A stretch of DNA of 63,239 nt, the filler included, from Reticulomyxa filosa (Eukaryota; Protista; Foraminifera): assembly GCA_000512085.1 (NCBI GenBank). It is 16 parts of 16 records of this genome, joined end to end, with 100 filler letters (N's around TTAATTAATTAA, not from the genome) between each part and the next. Parts side by side here need not be neighbours in the genome. Positions count along the whole stretch, not along the records: positions 14,230 to 20,467 come from ASPP01025812.1; 15 more parts are not named here. One strand, written 5' to 3'. Made by a program: the position numbers and the translations under genes. The notes beneath the pieces were generated by a model that was not told the origin of the DNA, made no database searches, and worked only from the letters and a program-made list of their open reading frames with translations. Of the stretch, positions 2,504-20,467 are shown piece by piece (the stretch's first letter is position 1; each line of letters opens with the position of its first letter).

Positions 2504-2752
2504 AAAAAATTTCTTATTTTCAATACAGGTTCAATTTATGTGAACTCTTTCGAAATTTTTAAAAATCATTTGAAAAAATCATATTTTTCATCAACCTAGA
2601 AAAAACTTATTATAAAACTAATTTAATATTTAAAAACTACAAGATTAGTAGATATTTTTTTTTAAAAAAATTAGTTTTAAATCTTTATTTTTCATCGAGA
2701 AAATCAATTCTCTTCATATATTGCCATTTAGGTATGGCAGTTTTTTGTACTT
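2504..2752 (-). mobile_element. Degenerate copy of a Tc1/mariner-like TIR family
   Basis: Similar to 12150-12348 and 63055-63239 (TAAAAACTAC..GATT.GTA.ATATTTTT; ..CATTTAGGT..). Confidence 0.55.
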
Positions 2753-4565
2753 TTTAAAAAGAATCTAAACGTTTTACATTTTAAAAATTTAAGTTTCAAA
2801 TAATGATTAAGAATACCAAGATTAATTATTGTATGTTTCAACATCACATAAACGAACTGTTTTATCATAGCATAAATATTGACCATCTTTCAATTTGTTT
2901 TTTCATTATCTTCTTTTTCTACTTTCAACTGTTTAGCATGGTACTATATTTATTATATTATTATTATCAATCTCAACTTTGGACTATCAACAAGTAATAA
3001 CACATATGAATATATTGACAAATATTTTTAAATGATTAAATATTCACATCGGGTTTCTTGTAAGTGTCAAATGTACTTTGATATTATTAGACTTGCTTTT
3101 GAATTGACTAATAGTTTGACAATTTTTGTTTCAATTGTTAGATATTTATCAATTAAATTATTTATTTATCTTTTCACTATTCATGTCATAATAATCGATT
3201 TGGCTATCGACTCAAGGAATAATTTAAAAAACTCACAAAAATTTTTTTAAATATATTAAGTTATTGAATTTACTTATCTTTTTCGTTGTTATCTTCTTTT
3301 ATTCAATTATTACAAAAACACAAAATAATTAAAAAACTATACAACATTAGAATAATTTGGTAAATTGAAATTAATTGATATAACTTGTCTAAATGATCTT
3401 TAATTTACTTTATTTTCAATCTATAATTACATTTGCTTTTTTTCATTCAAATTCGATCAGTTCACATATTATCCTTTTTATATTGTGTTTTTTCATTCAT
3501 CAATTGTTTCATATTCAAATCTTATTATCAAATGCAAATCACAAATAAATCTGAAACTTGTTGTCTCAATATTCTTTTTTTCGAAAATTCACAATTATCA
3601 TGTTATTTAATTGTACATTTTCAATCATTTTGCTTTAAGTAAGTTTACAAACAGTATTCTCTGATCAATTACTTGCTATGCATTTTGGTTCTAATTACAT
3701 TTAATTCCACTTAGTTGTTTGCGGTTTGACCGCAAATAAAGCATATTAATGTGTTTAATTGCTGTAGTTTATTGGTTAACAAAGCAAAGTCTTGTTATAA
3801 CAGCCAAAACTGGAAAATGTTTCATTTTCATTTTCTACGTTCAAGGCCAGCATAGCTTTTTTTATAGTAAGAGTTTTTTTAGTGTTTTATAAAGTTGTTG
3901 TTTTTTAACACTATCCAACACTTTGTTATGTTTATAAACGTTCAAATTACAAAATTTCGTGTGAATATCCAACAGTGATTATTATGTAAGAAATCTTTGC
4001 ATGTGTTTTTTTTATACAAAGTGAGTTTTTAAATTCAAAAAAGATGATCTAACAAATTCTCATAAAAACAATTATTGCGAAAATGATGAAACAAATTATA
4101 AACCATTTTTTTGCTAGAAAAGTAACGAAAATAACTAATTTACAAATTACTTTTATCAGTTAGTATATTTGAATATAACACTTGGTCTAGTCATGACTTC
4201 TTTCTTTTAATGAGAAAAGAACATTTGATATGACAAAAGAAATCTCATTTATAAAAAGAATTTGTGCCTACGCTGCCATGCGTTCAAAAAAAAATGTGGT
4301 GACGGTCCGAAGAAAGGACGGGTCCATTTGCAAGCACGAGCGTACTTGCAAGAAGAGAAGGTGCAAAATATTTTTGTCGCACAACTAAATGTCCCCTTCA
4401 TTCAAAACAAAAGAAAGCATAAAAAAAGCAGGGAAAAAAATATATGAATAAAACCTGAGGGTCAAAAGCAATGCACAATGCCAACTGGCACAAAAAAAAA
4501 AAATAAAATAAAAAAATCAAAAAAGTAAAAAAAACAAGAAATAAACAAAGTGTAATTTTTCTTGA

Positions 4566-6553
4566 CTATCGAAGACTGTATGCTTTTTGTTGCAAGAAGG
4601 CCATTTGCTGTCGAAGCTCTTCTTCATGTTCATCCAACTCTTCTTCGTCCCATTTAGCGACACTTTGAATCCTCAATAATCTAGAGCTGCGTCGACGCTC
4701 CCCTGCTTTTCCAATTTCCTCGTCACTTATCTCAGCATTTTCTTCTTCTTCTTGTTCTTCTTCGTCGTTAATCTCGTTTAGTTTTGTTCCTCTACGAGAT
4801 TCTTTTCCATCATAAGTAGCTTTTTCAACCGAAGCCTGGCGGTGTGGTGACTTTTTTTATATTATTATTTTAAAGATATTTGTTTTGTTTTATTTGCATT
4901 GAATATTCTGATCCTTTTTTTTAATTCTTTTTATCCTTCTCCCCTCACGAGAAATAGCACAAATATTTTGATCAGTAGAGAACTTGTAAGATGTTCAATT
5001 ATTATTGTTTTTATTTTTTTTAAAAAAAAAAGAAAGTGTTGTCTCGCATATGTCGTATATAAATTAATGAGCATATTGAAGTGTAATGAAACACTTATGA
5101 ACATACATGAACCCCAAATGAGCTGGTTCGCACAATCTCACCCGTTGGACTAATGACAGCAGCCCCATATGGATAGCCTGGGTTATTTGCTACGGGATAG
5201 CCGGGTACAGTCGCGTAAGGGGAATAGTAGACTGCGTTTGCTTGTTGGGCCATCATGGCTTGCTGTTGCATAAGCAATGCTTGCTGTTGTGCCAAGGCAG
5301 CACTATCCACATTGGTGTTATACGTACCGCTGTTCATTCCCAAATATGCTGCCGTCTGTTCGGGCGACACAGTAAAGTTTAGGCTTTCGTTAGTTGATCC
5401 ATTGGCTACCGTTTGTTCGTTGGAAACGAGAGCGATCGCATTATCACTTGCATTTGCGTTAGTATTATTGTTGTTATTGTTATTGTTATTGTTATTGTTA
5501 TTGTTATTGTTATTGTTAATATTAGCGTCGGTGTTATTGTTAATGTTGTTATTGCCGGTGCTGTTATTGTTGTTATCATTAGGAGTTGCAACAACAATAC
5601 TGGCAGTGGGGTCGATGATGGTACTCGTGTTAGTACTAGTTTCAGCAATGGTGTTGACACTGGGGTTGGTACTGATATTTGTGTCAGCGACACTGGCGTT
5701 GATACTGGCAACATTGGCATTGATACTGGTATTGGTATTTGCACTGGCGTTGGTATTGGTATTTGTATTGATATTGGTATTCGTGCTATTATTGGCACTG
5801 GTGTCCGCATTGGTATTGACACTGGGCTGAGCGTTGATATTGACGCTGGGCTCGGCAATGATACTGGCATTGGCATTTGCAGCGGGATTGACATCGGTGT
5901 TTGCGATGACAATGTCCGGGATTGCGCTAATATTGGCGTTGGTAGTTGCATCGGCAATATTGATGCTGGTGTTGGTATTAGTATTGGCATCGATGTTGGC
6001 GCTGCTATTGGTGCTAGGGCTAACGTTTGGGTTGATACCGACATTGGTGTTGGTATTGACATTAACATTGGTATCGGCATTAGCATTGGTATTGGTATTG
6101 GCATTAGCATTGATATTAGTATTGGGGTCGATATTAGTGCTAACACTGGAATAGGCAATGGTGTTGGGGTTTGTGTCAGCGCTGGCATTAACACTGGCAT
6201 TACCGCTGATAGCGGCGTTGCTGCTGGTAGAAGTACTGCTGCCGATACTAGCGTCGGTGTTGGTATTCGTAGTTGTATTGACGTCGGTATTCGTATTGAT
6301 GTTTGTGTTGGTATTGGCAATGGTATTAGTATTAGTATTGTCATCGATGTTCGTCTTGATGATATTAATATTGTTGTTGCTATTGCCATTGTTACCGTCA
6401 CTGTTATTGCTGTTACTAACATTACTGTTACCAGTATTGCTGTTATTGTTACTATTAGTCGTCGGTTGTGCCACGATTGTTGCAGCAACACTTGACTCAA
6501 CGTTTGGTTTTTCTGCCTTCACGACTGGTTGGATGGCCACTGGTTCTTGGCGA
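4566..6553 (-). CDS. Asn/Thr-rich low-complexity protein, 3' part; exons ~6553-5107 and 4850-4566
   Basis: 481-aa ORF with TNTNAN-type repeats and poly-N. A GTATGT donor splices in frame to an acidic terminal exon (..KWDEEELDEHEEELRQQMAFLQQKAYSLR*). Confidence 0.7.
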
Positions 6554-14006: not shown

Positions 14007-14278
14007 GTGACATATGCATTGGATATGTGTATACATACATATACATTAAACATACATATGTATCTATTTATATGCATATAAATATAATTTCTTTTTTATT
14101 GTGTGCCAAGTAATGTTAAAAAAAAAAAANNNNNNNNNNNNNNNNNNNNNNNNNNNNNNNNNNNNNNNNNNNNTTAATTAATTAANNNNNNNNNNNNNNN
14201 NNNNNNNNNNNNNNNNNNNNNNNNNNNNNTTTTTAAAAACCCGGAATTCAAACCCTTTCGGTTCCAACAAAATGAATA

Positions 14279-15509
14279 TTACATGACTGTACCCTTTCGA
14301 TGAACACCTTTTTTTTGATTTGATTTTTGTTCTTTCACATTTCCATCATCGATATAAAGTTTACCATTGACTTCATTTGCACCAATAAATTTATTTGAAA
14401 CAATATTTTGCATTCCAAAAATATTGTTATTATTGTTGTTATTCTTTTGATCATCATCTTGATCTTGGAATTGTTGTATGTTTGGTATGTCAATCATTCG
14501 AAATAGACATCTGTCATCTCTTCGATTGGTTAATACAACATTGGATAAGAGAGAGGAATTATTATGCACTGCCATAAAAGTCCCTGATTGACTTATTGCT
14601 TCAATTTTTATTCGAAAGTGCACTGTAAATTGACATTTTTGCTCAATGCAATCGATACCATCTGCATCAATTGTACTTCCACGATTTGATACTCTCAAAT
14701 ACTTTTTTGTACTCATATTTTGAAATGTTACTTTTTTATTCTTTCCTATTGTTTTCACTTTCCAAATACTGCTTTTATGTATACAATGACCTTGATTATC
14801 AACCATATATGATGTTGTATTCTCTTCATCATTTTCATTTTTGTACAATGTCTCTCCTTCTGTTATCTTTGATTGAATAAATCCATCTGTCAAATTAAAC
14901 CCAAAGTCTTTCTTGTTTTGTTTTTTTTTCATCACTCCATAGTGATCGTAGTCATGTTGAAGTACCACAGTAACTTCTGACTCTAAACCATAACTCTGAA
15001 GAGTGTAGTGAGTCATTAGGCTTTTTTTAAAAATAATTGAAAAAGGGCTATGCTCACTTCAAAATGTGTCCTTGGTTTTGTGTAAGAGTTTACTTATGTG
15101 GATTCAATTTGTCACCACTATCAAGAACATTTACTGACATTTTTGGTTTATGAATATCATCATCCCAAAGTGAAGAAAAATTAAAATTACATCGATTCCA
15201 AGAGAACAAAGAACAAAGTACAATAAGTACAATTTTCCATTTGCAATCACCAAACAAAAAATTTCTTTCAAATGTAGAAAGATTTACTTTTCAAACTTTA
15301 ATTGAAAGAAACATCATTTGGAAGCAGTTAGATTGCTTTCACTTTTGATCTTTAGTTTTTATAATTCTTGTCAACATATAATTTGTTTCGATTCGACAAA
15401 CGAAGGTCAAAATGTCAAAGATACAAACTTCTTTCAACCGTCTGATACATGATTCTTCAACTTCAAATACTTTGGACAACAAGCGCAAGTCTTTGAAATT
15501 TGTGATCAT
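14279..15509 (-). CDS. Putative beta-trefoil (fascin-like) protein, possibly with an N-terminal ubiquitin-like domain
   Basis: 245-aa ORF with FQNMSTKKYLRV / IEAISQSGTFMAV / MQNIVSNKFIG repeats. An upstream segment MITNFKDLRLLSKVFEVEESCIRRLKE and the motif TLQSYGL resemble Ubl ends. Exon structure unresolved. Confidence 0.45.
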
Positions 15510-15770
15510 ACAAAACTGATGAAGAATAAGAAAATAAAAAAAATGGAAGTGGCCCTTTTGGGCAAAACGCCCTACTCAACAAAAAAATAGGGAATTTGAT
15601 ATTTAGATTTTAAGACAGTTGGAAATATTAGTTAAATCCTAAATAAAACTTCTTTTTCATCACTTTGAATAATAATGAGCATTTTATTATTAGCTTCATA
15701 AAAAAACGTATTTTCAACTAACCCACAATGTTAAAAATCTTAAGGAAAGAAAAAAGATGACCACAATAAA

Positions 15771-15930
15771 CAGGAAAAAAAAAGATCCCTAAGATGAAGA
15801 CCTACAAATTCCCACAAGCTGTTTGTGACAAGCAATATTTTTTATATCTATGATTCATAGATATAAAAAATATTGCTTGTCACAAACAGCTTGTGGGTGT
15901 TTGTCTTCGTCTTAGGGGCTTTTTTTGCTG
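15771..15930. repeat. Long inverted repeat / hairpin
   Basis: Perfect 43-bp arms at 15811-15853 and 15855-15897 around 1 central nt, extended by imperfect arms to about 15771 and 15930. Confidence 0.95.
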
Positions 15931-15951
15931 TCGATTACTGGCAGTAGAACA

Positions 15952-18900
15952 TTACTGTGCTCTTTGATTTGTTTGTGCTTTGTTAATACCTACATTATGA
16001 TGGCTTCTTTTAAACGCAAAACTTTTGCATTCTTGATCACGAAACCACTCATAAATGATATCGTTCAGACGAATTCGATATCCAACATTGTGACCCCGCA
16101 TATAACAGTTTTGTGCATCAGTTTGGACTGAGAGATATGGCCAATTCTTTACAATTGATGGCAAATCTCCCTCACGAGGAGTATTACATAATGATTGAAT
16201 ATCACTATACAAATGTTCCATACTCTTATTGCTTTCCTCATTTCTCCATGCAAATGCATATTTGATGTAATTTTTCAACCATTTCTTATTTTTATTGATA
16301 TTCTCACTATTACATGGAAAATATGCAACTACATATGGCTGTATCTCTTTACAACGTTTGTTATTTGTTTGTATAGTTTTTTTTGGATGAGTATTTGATG
16401 GAACAGTTTTCATCCATCGGTTATCAATTCGAACCAAAATATAATTGAATGTTTTACACAAACTCAAATAAATAGTATGACCTTTATGACCAACCACCAA
16501 ACTCATTTCACAACATTCACTTTTTGATGATATTGGTTTTAAATTCACTAAACGATCCACTACATTTGAACTCCAATCATCAAGTAAATCTGGACATTTG
16601 TTGTGAATCCTCACACCTGTGATGTAATCCCAATATGTTGTCAATTGTACTTGCAATTCTTTCAATCCTTTTTCATACACTTTTTCAAATGTTGTATTCT
16701 TTGGTAACTCAATATGATATTTTCCATCTCGTTTCAATCGAACACAGATTTCAAATAATAGAAATATTCTATATCTTAGAAATTTTGTTACATGCCATCC
16801 ACTATCAAATCTTCTTGGATTTAAATTTTCAGGTTCAATGGATTTCACATTTCGACCAATTGCCCAATAAAATAAATTATCATTGATTAACATCTCTTTT
16901 AATTCTTTTTGATTCATTCCCAGTAAAAAAGATGCACCTTCTATTAATAATGTCTGATAACTATCTGCGTCAATGACTTTGCTGACACCGTCTTCATCAA
17001 TTAATTTGTCTTTGACATAATCAGTTGCATATTCAATTTGTTTCATTGGAAATATTGTTCGCTTCTTCAATATTAGCTTGCACAACTTTATCATTTCTGA
17101 ATATTCTTTTTTATTTTCTTTAATATTTTTTTCCTCTTCAATCTCTTCAATAAGTTCGCTGATGTATCCACAAGGAGTTTGTGCAGTATCTGCATCCAGA
17201 TAACCCTCGCTGACGTCAATCCACGCACCTTGCTCAATACAATAACGAGCAGTATCCCAATGTTTGTTATGTATTGCCACATGTAATGGAGTTTGTCCAT
17301 GTTCATTACATATATCATTTATGTCAATATGATGGTATTCCAATGCAGAATTTAGTTGTGATACATTACCTAATTTTGCTGCTTCATGAATGGAGGTATA
17401 ACGATCTTTATGTAAGTAATTATTTGAGTGTTGCAATTGTAATTTAATTTGCAAGGTATCATAATCACTCCATTTTTGTTGAATTAGAAATCCACATTCC
17501 CTAAATTTCTTATCGTAACAACGTTTCAATTCATTAAAAGCCTCAGAATTGATAATGTTATCATTATTATCATTGTGATCGAATTGCATGCGAGGGTTAT
17601 ATAACAATAAACCAAATGCTAGAAATTCCATTTCAATGTTTTTTTCCCCCATTTTAATTTTGGTATTTTCCTTCAATGCAGTGATTGTAACACGTCTCCA
17701 CATATCATCTGATATTTTTGACAATACTGAATTTACTTTATCACGTTGTCTCACAGAGATATTTTTGAACTCTTTCAAAAAACTATTTAGTAGTAAACAC
17801 AATTGCTCATCATCCAATTTCATTACAATTGTTCCAAGTACTTTTATGCATAAATCGCCAATGTTCTTGTAGAAATGATTAAATCCATCAATCAAAAATT
17901 TGCATACAATAGTCAACTGTTGTTCTCTCACTTTCGTTGATATTGTTTGAAGTATATTTTCACAGAAATATCGAACTTGGTCATATTCGTCCTCGAGTCC
18001 ATATTGTAAACATTCAAGTAGATCGTCTAATTGATCATTCGAATTTGGTACTAGTTTTCGAAGTATATCAGCATATAAGAATCGCATCTCAGAATCTTTA
18101 TCCTTGAATTCACTTTTAAGACAATGAAACAAATTATCCAATTGTCCTTTATTCAATCTCAATGCTATCACTTTAAGTCCTTTCGCAGATGAAATACGAA
18201 CATCACGATTTTTAGTGTTGAGATTGTCTATCAAAATTTTGAATGTGTTTTCTATTTGTCGTTTACTTAATTTCGATGATATTGCTTCAATTATGTCTGC
18301 ACAATAAAAACGAATATCTTTCTCTTCATTTTTTGAGTTCATTGAACAAATGATAGATAATATTATCAAATTGTTTTTCTTTGCATTTTATTAAGATAGT
18401 TTCAGATGACCGGACAGACAGTATGTGAGCAAGTTCATTTGCATTTTGTTTATTCAACTTTAATAAAACTCTTTCAAGTGAATATGCACAATATTTCTGC
18501 ACAAATCCATTTTCATTACCATCATTTACTCCATTCATCAAACATTTCAAAGTACCACTCAATTGTTGTTTACTCAATTTCATTGCTACTCTTCCAAGAG
18601 ATTCTGCACATGACATTCGAACTAACATATCTTCGTTCTTATTATTTAATTTGTTTATCAAACATTCCCACGCAGTATTCAATTGTTTATTATTCAGTTT
18701 CACTGATACTCTTCCAATTGATTCTGCACATGAATATTGGACATTTTTACTTGGGTCTTTTTTGAGTCCATTCACCAAATAGTTGAAAACATCAGCACTC
18801 AATTGTTTTTCATTCAATTTCAGTTTTTGAATTGTTTGTGCACATAAATAACGAACATCATTCTTGTATTTGGATCCATTCTTAAGCAAATACATAACAA

Positions 18901-20467
18901 AATTATCTAATTGTGTTTGATTCCATTTCATTAACAGTGCTATCAATAGATCGATACATAATTTATGAATACGCTGTTTCTTACGTTTCAAACCCTTTAT
19001 TAAATATTTGAAAGCAGTATCCAAATGAATTTCATTCAATTGTACTAAAATTTTTGTATATGATGCTTTGTACAACCAATGTCCACCCTTGTCCTTATTG
19101 TTAATTAATTTATTCATTAAATGCTCAAAAACAACATCCGCTTGTACTGGCTTCCATTTCTTCAAAAGTGTTTCAATCAATCGTACACAATAATGACGAA
19201 TAACTTTTCGTTTATCTTGCAATCCATCTATCATAAAATGAAATGTATTATTCGGTTGTTTTTTATTCAATTTCATTGAAATTTTTTCAAGTAAATTTGC
19301 AGATGACTGACGAAAGAATTCATTTCCATCCTCTAATGAATCCAACAAGCATTTACAAATATATTCCAATTGTTTTTTGTTCAATTTCATTACAATGGTT
19401 TTAAGTACTATTGCACACAATTTAAAGACATCTATATCTTTAGTATTAAATCCTAAAACTATATATTTTAAAGCATTGTCCATTTGTTTTTTATTTAATT
19501 TTACTACAATTGTTCGAATTGTATTTGCACATGCATTACAATAAGAAATTTTTTTATTGATAAACATATTAATCAAATCTCGAAAAGCATCATCTAATTG
19601 TTTTTTATTCATGTTCAATGATATTATTTTAATTAACTTGGCACATTCTTCATGTAAATCTATATTTTGACTTTGGAACCCGTCCAATAAAATGTCAGTA
19701 ATATCCACTCGTTTTTTATTCAATTTTTTCACAATGATTTTGAGTGTATTTGTGCACACAGCACAAAGAGGAATATTTTTGTTGAATATATCCATTAAGC
19801 ATTTAAGATTATCCTTCAATTGTTTCTTATTCATCTTCCACGATATTTCTTCAATTAATTTGGCACATTTCTTATGGACATACTCATCTCCATTATGGAG
19901 TCCATCCAATAAAACTTCAATAACACGATTTATTTGTGTTTCACTCACTTTCAATGCTATTGCTTCAAGTATATCCACGAGTATCACTCCACATTTGGGG
20001 TATAGACGGGACCATCGCTTTTTCGTTTCTGATGTTTGTGATACGCCCAGTTGACCTATGATACATAAGTAAATATCTGGATGAACAAGGATATTTGACA
20101 AATTTGGAATATTTCTTACTATCGCTTTATGGAATGATCGATCCACAATTCTGTACTCATTACCATTTTTGAATCTGTCAATATTGATCCAAGCAATCAA
20201 AAATGATTTGAATGAATCAATGAGATTCTTGTGGCAGTTTTGAAGTTGAGATGAAAGAAATGGACTCTCTGTGTCTGCTTTGCAAACATCCAGACAACGC
20301 ATATGAAATATCATTCGATGAATATAAGAGAGCTGAGAAAGTGATGGAGAATGTAACAATTTCCAAAAATATAGTAATCCAGATCCTGATGAATCTTTTT
20401 TACTTTCAATATTATCATATAATATCCCAGCCATAAATGGAATCATCATTGAATATTTGGGATTGAG
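15952..20467 (-). CDS. HEAT-repeat + ankyrin + C-terminal cysteine-protease-like protein (probable NACHT/NLR-like; 5' truncated; one homopolymer frameshift at ~18330)
   Basis: The 707-aa and 805-aa ORFs fuse if one base is removed from the A6 run. Many LNxxQL..CA..L repeats; ankyrin motifs SIHEAAKLG and GQTPLHVA; terminal GHKGHTIYL / IDNR / QTDAQNC. Confidence 0.8.

Follow-up and report, generated by a model that had tools for sequence, protein, structure and literature searches.

What kind of protein is encoded by a long, repeat-rich gene of the foraminiferan Reticulomyxa filosa, and what might its C-terminal domain do? The gene lies on the minus strand within positions 14230-20467 of the window, i.e., the whole stretch of 63,239 nucleotides (16 parts of assembly GCA_000512085.1 joined end to end); these positions represent an entire 6238-bp contig (ASPP01025812.1) with a GC content of about 30%. 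We conclude that the gene probably belongs to a large R. filosa family of STAND NTPases with the domain order NACHT-HEAT-Ank-CPLD, where CPLD denotes a cysteine-protease-like domain of the same type as that of the Legionella effectors AnkH and AnkD, the whole protein being NLR-like. The architecture and the fold match of the gene are well supported, and we infer a protease activity and an immune role for the family. A preliminary description, made from the sequence alone, had read the locus as an NLR-like sensor with a C-terminal protease. That interpretation was supported and its observations were partly confirmed; the main correction is a frame break within the gene, and our additions are the AnkH/AnkD-type identity of the domain, the finding that it is widespread among the NACHT proteins of intracellular bacteria, and a probable gene transfer.

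Architecture of the gene and its family

The contig end cuts the gene on its 5′ side, the break falling inside the gene just after the NACHT region, and the window carries the 3′ ~4.5 kb, as follows:

20018-20467, minus strand: helical region after NACHT, ~150 residues at the start of the frame that runs open to the contig edge (from paralog alignment)
18329-20017, minus strand: HEAT array, part 1, ~14 repeats recurring every ~38 aa, frame A (from Pfam; KKQL every 38 residues)
18326-18334, minus strand: frame break, an A6 run (18329-18334) and then an in-frame TGA (18326-18328) (from the list of open reading frames and the sequence)
17650-18325, minus strand: HEAT array, part 2, ~6 repeats, frame B (from weak Pfam matches and paralog alignments)
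17212-17445, minus strand: two to three ankyrin repeats, residues 309-386 of the downstream open reading frame, ORF1 (from Pfam, above cut-offs)
15952-15954, minus strand: stop codon of the gene (from the list of open reading frames)

The long HEAT array that had been claimed for this protein was recovered by Pfam, the best matches being to ARM_TBCD_2nd (E = 7e-16), HEAT (5e-10), and HEAT_2 (1.3e-07). In its second part the matches, to ARM_TBCD_2nd and TPR_DNAAF5 in ORF1 residues 35-212, were all below the curated cut-offs. The total is ~20 repeats, placed C-terminal of the NTPase region as in NACHT-class STAND/NLR-like proteins. The two to three ankyrin repeats, previously placed at ~17215-17395, gave matches above the curated cut-offs for Ank_2 (5.2e-07), Ank (6.8e-07), and Ank_3 (1.6e-06). 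They stand directly N-terminal of the C-terminal module, which starts at about residue 390 of ORF1, and bacterial relatives likewise place ankyrins before the module.

The 5′ end of the gene in the window (LNPKYSMMIPFMAGILY...), which had been taken for the helix that follows a NACHT domain, aligned at 45-70% identity with residues ~477-650 of five R. filosa proteins (P0024, P0026, P0027, P0029, and P0030), i.e., with the region that follows NACHT. A check for NACHT in these fuller paralogs was positive: the domain was matched by Pfam at residues ~100-370 (E = 1e-18 to 3e-20), with an intact Walker A motif (GxxxxGKS). From the position of this alignment, ~480-500 residues including NACHT would therefore lie upstream of the contig end in the paralogs and be absent here. 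P0029 also gave a weak NLRC4_HD2 match at residues 458-512. NACHT and HEAT occur within one open reading frame in P0027; a partial NACHT, HEAT, and the C-terminal domain occur in a single R. filosa gene model (P0034, ETO14922.1, annotated "NTPase"); and NACHT, HEAT, and Ank by Pfam occur together with the CPLD in a single protein from a marine metagenome (P0062). On one R. filosa contig (L001), 120 nt separate a NACHT gene from the HEAT-Ank-CPLD gene that follows it on the same strand.

The gene had been described as a single intronless open reading frame of about 1500 codons, and this did not hold. There are two long minus-strand frames, 18326-20449 (open to the contig edge at 20467) and 15952-18369, which differ in frame and have 44 nt in common; they were kept separate, and never joined, for all searches. 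The upstream frame terminates ...FNELKK-TGA, and the same bases in the downstream frame read ...NSKNEEKDIRFYCADII. The ~38-residue HEAT register is uninterrupted across the A6 run despite the change of frame, which places the meeting point of the two frames within that run. An intron at the junction was considered and rejected because of the 44-nt overlap and the continuous HEAT register.

This one-base break may be either a sequencing or assembly error or a real lesion. That it is real, so that this copy is a dead pseudogene yielding no full-length protein, has in our view somewhat less than an even chance. Besides the two frames themselves, the split state of the paralogous loci L001, L126, and L129 and the loss of a putative catalytic residue (see below) in 7 of 17 paralogs would fit such decay. 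However, a single break in 4.5 kb, in a homopolymer, is typical of sequencing error, and both frames are otherwise free of stops, with the catalytic and family-conserved residues all intact.

The family is large. A word-indexed search with the C-terminal module gave 20 matches, all 20 from R. filosa and 50-73% identical, most of which also carry HEAT and ankyrin repeats. The first 150 residues retrieved a further 16 proteins, again all (16/16) from R. filosa, the identities across both searches being 45-73%. These matches assign the gene to R. filosa, or to a species very near it. The genome holds dozens of paralog models, which have diverged to 45-77% identity and are often fragmentary, and L001, L126, and L129 are broken into several open reading frames or gene models. 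Existing labels on R. filosa members are "hypothetical," "NTPase," "viral A-type inclusion protein," and "phosphorylase."

Two features of the paralogs may be recorded separately. L001 (ASPP01033337.1, 292-7895) holds two family members arranged tail to tail: on the plus strand a NACHT gene is paired with a HEAT-Ank-CPLD gene, and the minus strand carries another CPLD gene; its HEAT gene is also split into overlapping frames (2654-4327 and 4258-6012), bridged by an annotated intron. P0004, P0005, P0007, and P0012 from R. filosa have an extra conserved tail, the last ~140 residues after the CPLD (…LMKLLSKQLKV…GIAVEQ…FYFDT…), which had no Pfam match in P0005, the one scanned. Continuation of this tail past the stop codon of the gene in the window was rejected, no trace of it being found downstream by tblastn.

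Conserved residues and predicted fold of the C-terminal domain

The C-terminal module comprises 416 aa, on which the residue numbering is based, with a core of 275 aa. Its features are:

16822-17202, minus strand: helical, cap-like N-terminal part of the module, with a low-complexity Glu/Lys stretch (model 1 helices 10-116; covered by the AnkH alignment)
15997-16821, minus strand: AnkH/AnkD-type CPLD core, 275 aa, as predicted from the AF2 model and structural matches
16477-16479, minus strand: putative general-base His, H242, the second His of GHKGH (invariant in 45 homologs)
16420-16425, minus strand: Asp260-Asn261 of RIDNR (both at least 90% conserved)
16105-16125, minus strand: Q-x4-N-C, i.e., Gln360 (16123-16125), Asn365, and the putative nucleophile Cys366 (16105-16107) (Gln invariant; Asn and Cys at least 90% conserved)

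The last ~400 residues had no match in Pfam or among PDB sequences. Of the peptidase families of Pfam (C48, C55, C57, C5, and others), none was matched by any of 45 members with E as high as 0.1, or by the window protein with E up to 1. Because Pfam and the word-indexed search left the domain open, a full hidden Markov model search was made. It gave 139 matches, distant relatives at 20-37% identity included. A profile that retained the N-terminal extension was swamped by ankyrin repeats and was therefore trimmed.

Across 45 diverse members E182, H242, and Q360 were invariant, and G135, L142, Y245, R258, D260, N261, H272, Y312, Y332, N365, C366, G374, and R378 were at least 90% conserved. The His, Asp/Asn, Gln, and Cys picked out by the preliminary description were found exactly where it had put them, and their conservation in these homologs, which are just 17-37% identical outside the foraminiferan, with His and Gln invariant and Asp, Asn, and Cys at 90% or more, is far beyond chance; the full set was retained in 42 of the 45. 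Within the expanded foraminiferan family, the loss of catalytic residues in 7 of the 17 aligned paralogs would point to decay or to pseudo-enzymes.

For the structural comparison, we take AnkH to be LegA3 (PDB 6MCA) and AnkD to be LegA15 (PDB 7EW8, 7KJ6, and 7XQL), both effectors of Legionella pneumophila. AnkH is among the few effectors conserved genus-wide in Legionella. An AlphaFold model of the module built from 17 close paralogs (model 1; predicted local distance difference test score, pLDDT, 72.8) returned only noise with Foldseek, i.e., DH-PH and BAR-PH lookalikes. An exhaustive structural scan with the same model ranked AnkH (6MCA, Z 8.2, model residues 1-390 on chain residues 67-364) and AnkD (7EW8, Z 7.1) top. 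An AF2 model of the 275-aa core from a diverse alignment (model 2) had a pLDDT of 91.2 and a predicted template modeling score of 0.89, and its matches in a VIA scan (with root mean square deviation, rmsd) were:

AnkD: Z 13.7, rmsd 3.5, 200 residues aligned
AnkH: Z 13.3, rmsd 3.8, 205 residues aligned
an unrelated helical protein: Z 8.1, rmsd 2.9, 81 residues aligned
XopD (CE clan): Z 6.2, rmsd 4.5, 148 residues aligned
NopD (CE clan): Z 5.4, rmsd 4.7, 148 residues aligned
NEDP1 (CE clan): Z 5.1, rmsd 5.2, 147 residues aligned

With Foldseek, the six top rows for model 2 were LegA15/AnkD entries and AnkH stood at rank 9, with probabilities of 0.90-0.96. In this model the His opens a strand, the Asp/Asn closes the antiparallel strand that follows, and the Cys stands at the N-terminus of a long helix (239-266), Gln360 being six residues before Cys366 (five between). 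On the model, this placement agrees with the geometry that has been reported for AnkH and CE-clan enzymes (PMC6712400). The scores for AnkD and AnkH (Z 13.7 and 13.3) and for XopD, NopD, and NEDP1 (Z 5-6) are in line with the earlier claim of a CE-clan-like fold with the order H-D/N-Q-C, and suggest that the domain is a divergent version of that fold, of AnkH/AnkD type. A shape search of the ESM Atlas gave nothing exceeding a template modeling (TM) score of 0.3, and its feature neighbors were unnamed clusters. A ShET2/Toxin_15 cluster among them was rejected as evidence, its score being just 0.80 and Pfam support being absent.

For a comparison in sequence, Legionellales genomes were searched with a DNA pattern for the published GNCSWANV motif, which yielded 47 AnkH orthologs; H243, D258, and C324, known from the literature, are recovered among the residues invariant in them. 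Against these orthologs, hhalign placed the family GH on AnkH GH243 (probability 71.7%, E = 3.5e-05, 38 columns), and a relaxed alignment set EGW on EGF, Q..NC on Q..GNC324, and RIDN on KCDR (D258), all in register. With trimmed profiles the probability was 25%. The link between the CPLD and AnkH is strong in structure and weak in sequence.

The cysteine-protease-like domain of AnkH has been described as CE-clan-like with an H-D-C triad, which is required in vivo; protease activity in vitro was absent, and AnkH acts via protein binding, to LARP7 (PMC6712400). LegA15/AnkD is reported to bind and hydrolyze GTP, the Cys activating water and the His being dispensable (PMC9757750). One may ask, then, whether the CPLD is not a protease at all, but a nucleotide-binding or -hydrolyzing switch of the LegA15/AnkD kind, with a water-activating Cys and GTP-holding basic residues. 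AnkD/LegA15 is indeed the top structural match in both the scan and Foldseek; its GTP hydrolysis is abolished by C361S and little affected by H268A (PMC9757750); and R258 and R378 of our family are at least 90% conserved and close to the triad residues in sequence. However, the invariant His242 and the Gln six residues before the Cys fit a Cys-His hydrolase with an oxyanion hole. Moreover, the GTP-contacting residues of LegA15 have no clear counterparts, the position after the Asn being Arg or Leu and that at Cys+6 being Asn rather than Lys or Arg, and it would be unusual for a NACHT protein to bear a further NTPase. On balance we regard a nucleotide switch as unlikely. A Cys-His hydrolase is favored because His242 and Gln360 are invariant, and the conserved R258, H272, E182, and R378 may leave room for a different substrate.

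Relatives in intracellular bacteria and the origin of the family

All of the relatives from outside R. filosa that could be placed were bacterial (Chlamydiae-like, Jidaibacter, Midichloriaceae, and Protochlamydia). Those with names are Candidatus Jidaibacter acanthamoeba (WP_039458693.1), a Midichloriaceae metagenome-assembled genome (MAG), a Pseudomonadota MAG, and Protochlamydia amoebophila. Bacterial CPLD homologs matched the family profile at E = 1e-9 to 1e-50. The proposed tie to effectors of intracellular bacteria was thus borne out twice, Legionella effectors having the closest folds and the sequence relatives being in Chlamydiae-like bacteria and Rickettsiales. Genomic surroundings agree with a bacterial assignment: P0056, on a 53-kb TARA scaffold, has as its neighbors EF-P, HU, RNase E/G, an ATP/ADP translocase (TLC), and Hc1, a gene set of Chlamydiae-like type; P0048 adjoins a NACHT gene on a bacterial contig; P0149 is carried on a circular 2.28-Mb genome; and the neighbor genes of P0100, P0116, and P0137 are bacterial.

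The position of the domain varies among these proteins. The ankyrin-CPLD unit is C-terminal of NACHT in P0062, P0108, P0109, P0118, P0137, P0147, and P0148, and so is the CPLD in P0122, which had no Pfam ankyrin match. In P0107 and P0157 the unit precedes NACHT and so holds the N-terminal position that is classical for an effector; the CPLD is also N-terminal in P0149, a protein that the Pfam ankyrin scan did not include. P0137 additionally carries a TIR domain, and shorter bacterial proteins consist of ankyrin-CPLD alone, like AnkH and AnkD. The idea of a protease-like domain placed C-terminally, after the repeats, therefore stands for the foraminiferan proteins, but the position is not fixed, since some bacterial relatives have it N-terminal of NACHT. 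Such shuffling around NACHT is as expected of an output module of STAND proteins.

Several observations were made on the bacterial loci in passing. The Chlamydiae-like TARA scaffold_487 (L124, 1-14893) carries three giant genes in tandem, encoding a HEAT protein, a 2220-aa NACHT-HEAT-Ank protein, and the 1630-aa P0056, in which Ala replaces the catalytic Cys. Other bacterial CPLD genes have genes of effector- or toxin-like type as neighbors: beside them lie a 1635-aa protein with Pertussis_S1/Scabin-like ADP-ribosyltransferase matches (L127, 15894-20801) and an 865-aa OTU-domain protein (L125, 3667-6264), and PemK toxins and transposases occur near the CPLD genes of these two loci.

In a maximum-likelihood tree of the CPLD core, the R. 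filosa sequences formed one clade (support 100), nested in a clade (support 99) with P0056, P0062, P0048, and P0052, next to a Rickettsiales group. R. filosa was the only eukaryote found among the relatives, for which reason it seems likely that the whole NACHT-HEAT-Ank-CPLD gene was transferred between an intracellular bacterium and the foraminiferan, in either direction. Reading the direction from the tree was dropped because the tree is unrooted, the R. filosa clade being one side of a branch.

It might be objected that the contig is DNA of a bacterial symbiont or contaminant of the R. filosa culture, not foraminiferan nuclear DNA, since the relatives placed from outside the foraminiferan are all bacterial, a Chlamydiae-like scaffold belongs to the nearest clade, and the gene is without introns. 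We consider this very unlikely, because dozens of diverged and fragmentary paralogs are far above the capacity of a small symbiont genome, because R. filosa contigs have long non-coding stretches and low gene density (15017-15951 here; L130 and L126), and because no bacterial housekeeping genes were seen on the five R. filosa contigs examined.

Downstream of the gene, positions 15017-15951 are a spacer of ~930 bp between minus-strand open reading frames, AT-rich and with four short frames of 44-56 aa in any frame; it fits eukaryotic rather than bacterial gene spacing. Beyond it, at 14279-15016 on the minus strand, lies a 245-aa frame with a poly-Asn run. Its sole match in a search of 5.8 billion proteins was itself, and its Pfam matches, to RicinB_lectin_2 (E = 0.006) and Peptidase_C78 (E = 0.002), were weak and sub-threshold. 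It may be an orphan gene, or no gene at all.

Proposed function and comparison with known systems

The family plan, as we reconstruct it, is a short N-terminus, NACHT, a helical domain, ~20 HEAT repeats, two to three ankyrins, and a C-terminal CPLD. Such a protein would work in an NLR-like manner: the HEAT array would bind a ligand, NACHT would drive nucleotide-dependent oligomerization, and ankyrin-CPLD would be the output. That output would most likely be a Cys-His hydrolase that cuts a peptide or isopeptide bond, of the ubiquitin (Ub) or ubiquitin-like (Ubl) type, on a target held by the ankyrins. The family most likely came to the foraminiferan through a gene transfer in which intracellular bacteria were the donors or the recipients; it later expanded, and many copies have since decayed. 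A bolder and distinctly tentative proposal is that ankyrin-CPLD is a genuine output domain of NACHT STAND proteins in Chlamydiae, Rickettsiales, and others, that AnkH and AnkD are detached versions of it, and that the foraminiferan captured a bacterial gene and expanded it as immune or cell-death receptors.

Several results weigh against this reading of the gene as an NLR-like receptor with a hydrolase output. The contig ends before any NACHT domain, and with its frame break the copy in the window may be a pseudogene. Bona fide CE proteases score only Z 5-6, above most background yet within the range of chance arrangements. Sequence homology to AnkH is weak (hhalign probability 25-72%), and a search of PDB sequences with the family profile by hmmsearch returned nothing, neither AnkH nor AnkD. 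The biochemistry of the fold is disputed, given that AnkH was inactive in vitro (PMC6712400) and LegA15/AnkD was reported as a GTPase (PMC9757750). All four catalytic residues are present in just 10 of the 17 R. filosa paralogs aligned, and from the additional conserved residues E182, R258, H272, and R378 the active site may be more complex. There was also no match to the PADLOC curated models of bacterial defense, and the literature held nothing relevant for NACHT in Reticulomyxa, NACHT in Jidaibacter, or NACHT with AnkH.

Some of these results would suit a protein with no part in immunity, i.e., a regulatory scaffold, for example in control of the cytoskeleton or trafficking in a giant motile cell, with the CPLD as a binding module or pseudo-enzyme. 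HEAT and ankyrin repeats mediate interactions of a general kind, AnkH works by binding LARP7 without protease activity in vitro (PMC6712400), and some paralogs lack the Cys or the His. Strict retention of H, D/N, Q, and C over ~80% sequence divergence nevertheless argues for catalysis, and a large, fast-diverging, and partly decaying NACHT-repeat family with a swappable terminal domain and one TIR is the usual signature of immunity or conflict. We rate a scaffold as quite improbable, below even a nucleotide switch, and keep to the NLR-like receptor with a hydrolase output.

The results define a domain family that is without a Pfam model or annotation and is tied structurally to AnkH. Its recurrent fusion to NACHT at either end, once with TIR, suggests a signaling output and opens another approach to the role of AnkH and AnkD in host cells. 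The results also document an expanded NLR-like family in Rhizaria, a supergroup in which innate immunity is almost unexplored, and, with the nearest relatives in obligate intracellular bacteria of protists, make probable a symbiont-host transfer of a whole 6-kb multidomain gene.

How does the family compare with systems already known? AnkH and AnkD are its best structural matches by a wide margin over the next (Z 8.1). Like the CPLD, their domains follow directly on ankyrins and have His, Asp/Asn, and Cys in the same order and at the same secondary-structure positions, the counterparts of Asp260-Asn261 being D258 in AnkH and N290 in LegA15 (PMC6712400, PMC9757750). The motifs are also alike: GH, D-N-R, and Q-x-x-G-N-C in AnkH against Q-x(2-4)-[GN]-N-C in the family. 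However, identity is just 7-10%, AnkH and AnkD are secreted effectors of ~450 aa without NACHT or HEAT, AnkH has an additional C-terminal helical domain, and the hairpin between His and Asp is longer in the CPLD (18 residues, compared with 15).

The CE-clan proteases of the Ulp1/SENP family C48 (XopD, NopD, and NEDP1/SENP8) share with the CPLD the order His, Asp/Asn, Gln, Cys, with the Gln shortly before the Cys, and may also share its core fold (Z 6.2, 5.4, and 5.1 over ~148 residues). The CPLD differs from them in an insertion of ~100 residues between the Asp and the Gln-Cys, in extra helices, and in giving no C48 match in Pfam. The NACHT-(HEAT)-Ank-CPLD proteins of intracellular bacteria (Jidaibacter, the Midichloriaceae MAG, and the TARA scaffold) are true homologs in the sequence of the CPLD; many have the whole domain order of the foraminiferan proteins, and the catalytic residues are conserved. 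These are 20-37% identical, occur in single or few copies, and are annotated as hypothetical or for the NACHT domain only.

Finally, the family resembles the NACHT class of NLR/STAND proteins (animal NLRs, fungal NLR-like proteins, and bacterial NACHT proteins) in having, after NACHT, a helical domain and then a long array of repeats. It also shares their family traits, being large, fast-diverging, and partly pseudogenized, with a terminal domain that shifts position and a TIR domain in one relative. It differs from them in using HEAT repeats instead of LRR, WD40, or TPR, and in carrying its putative effector at the C-terminus, after the repeats.

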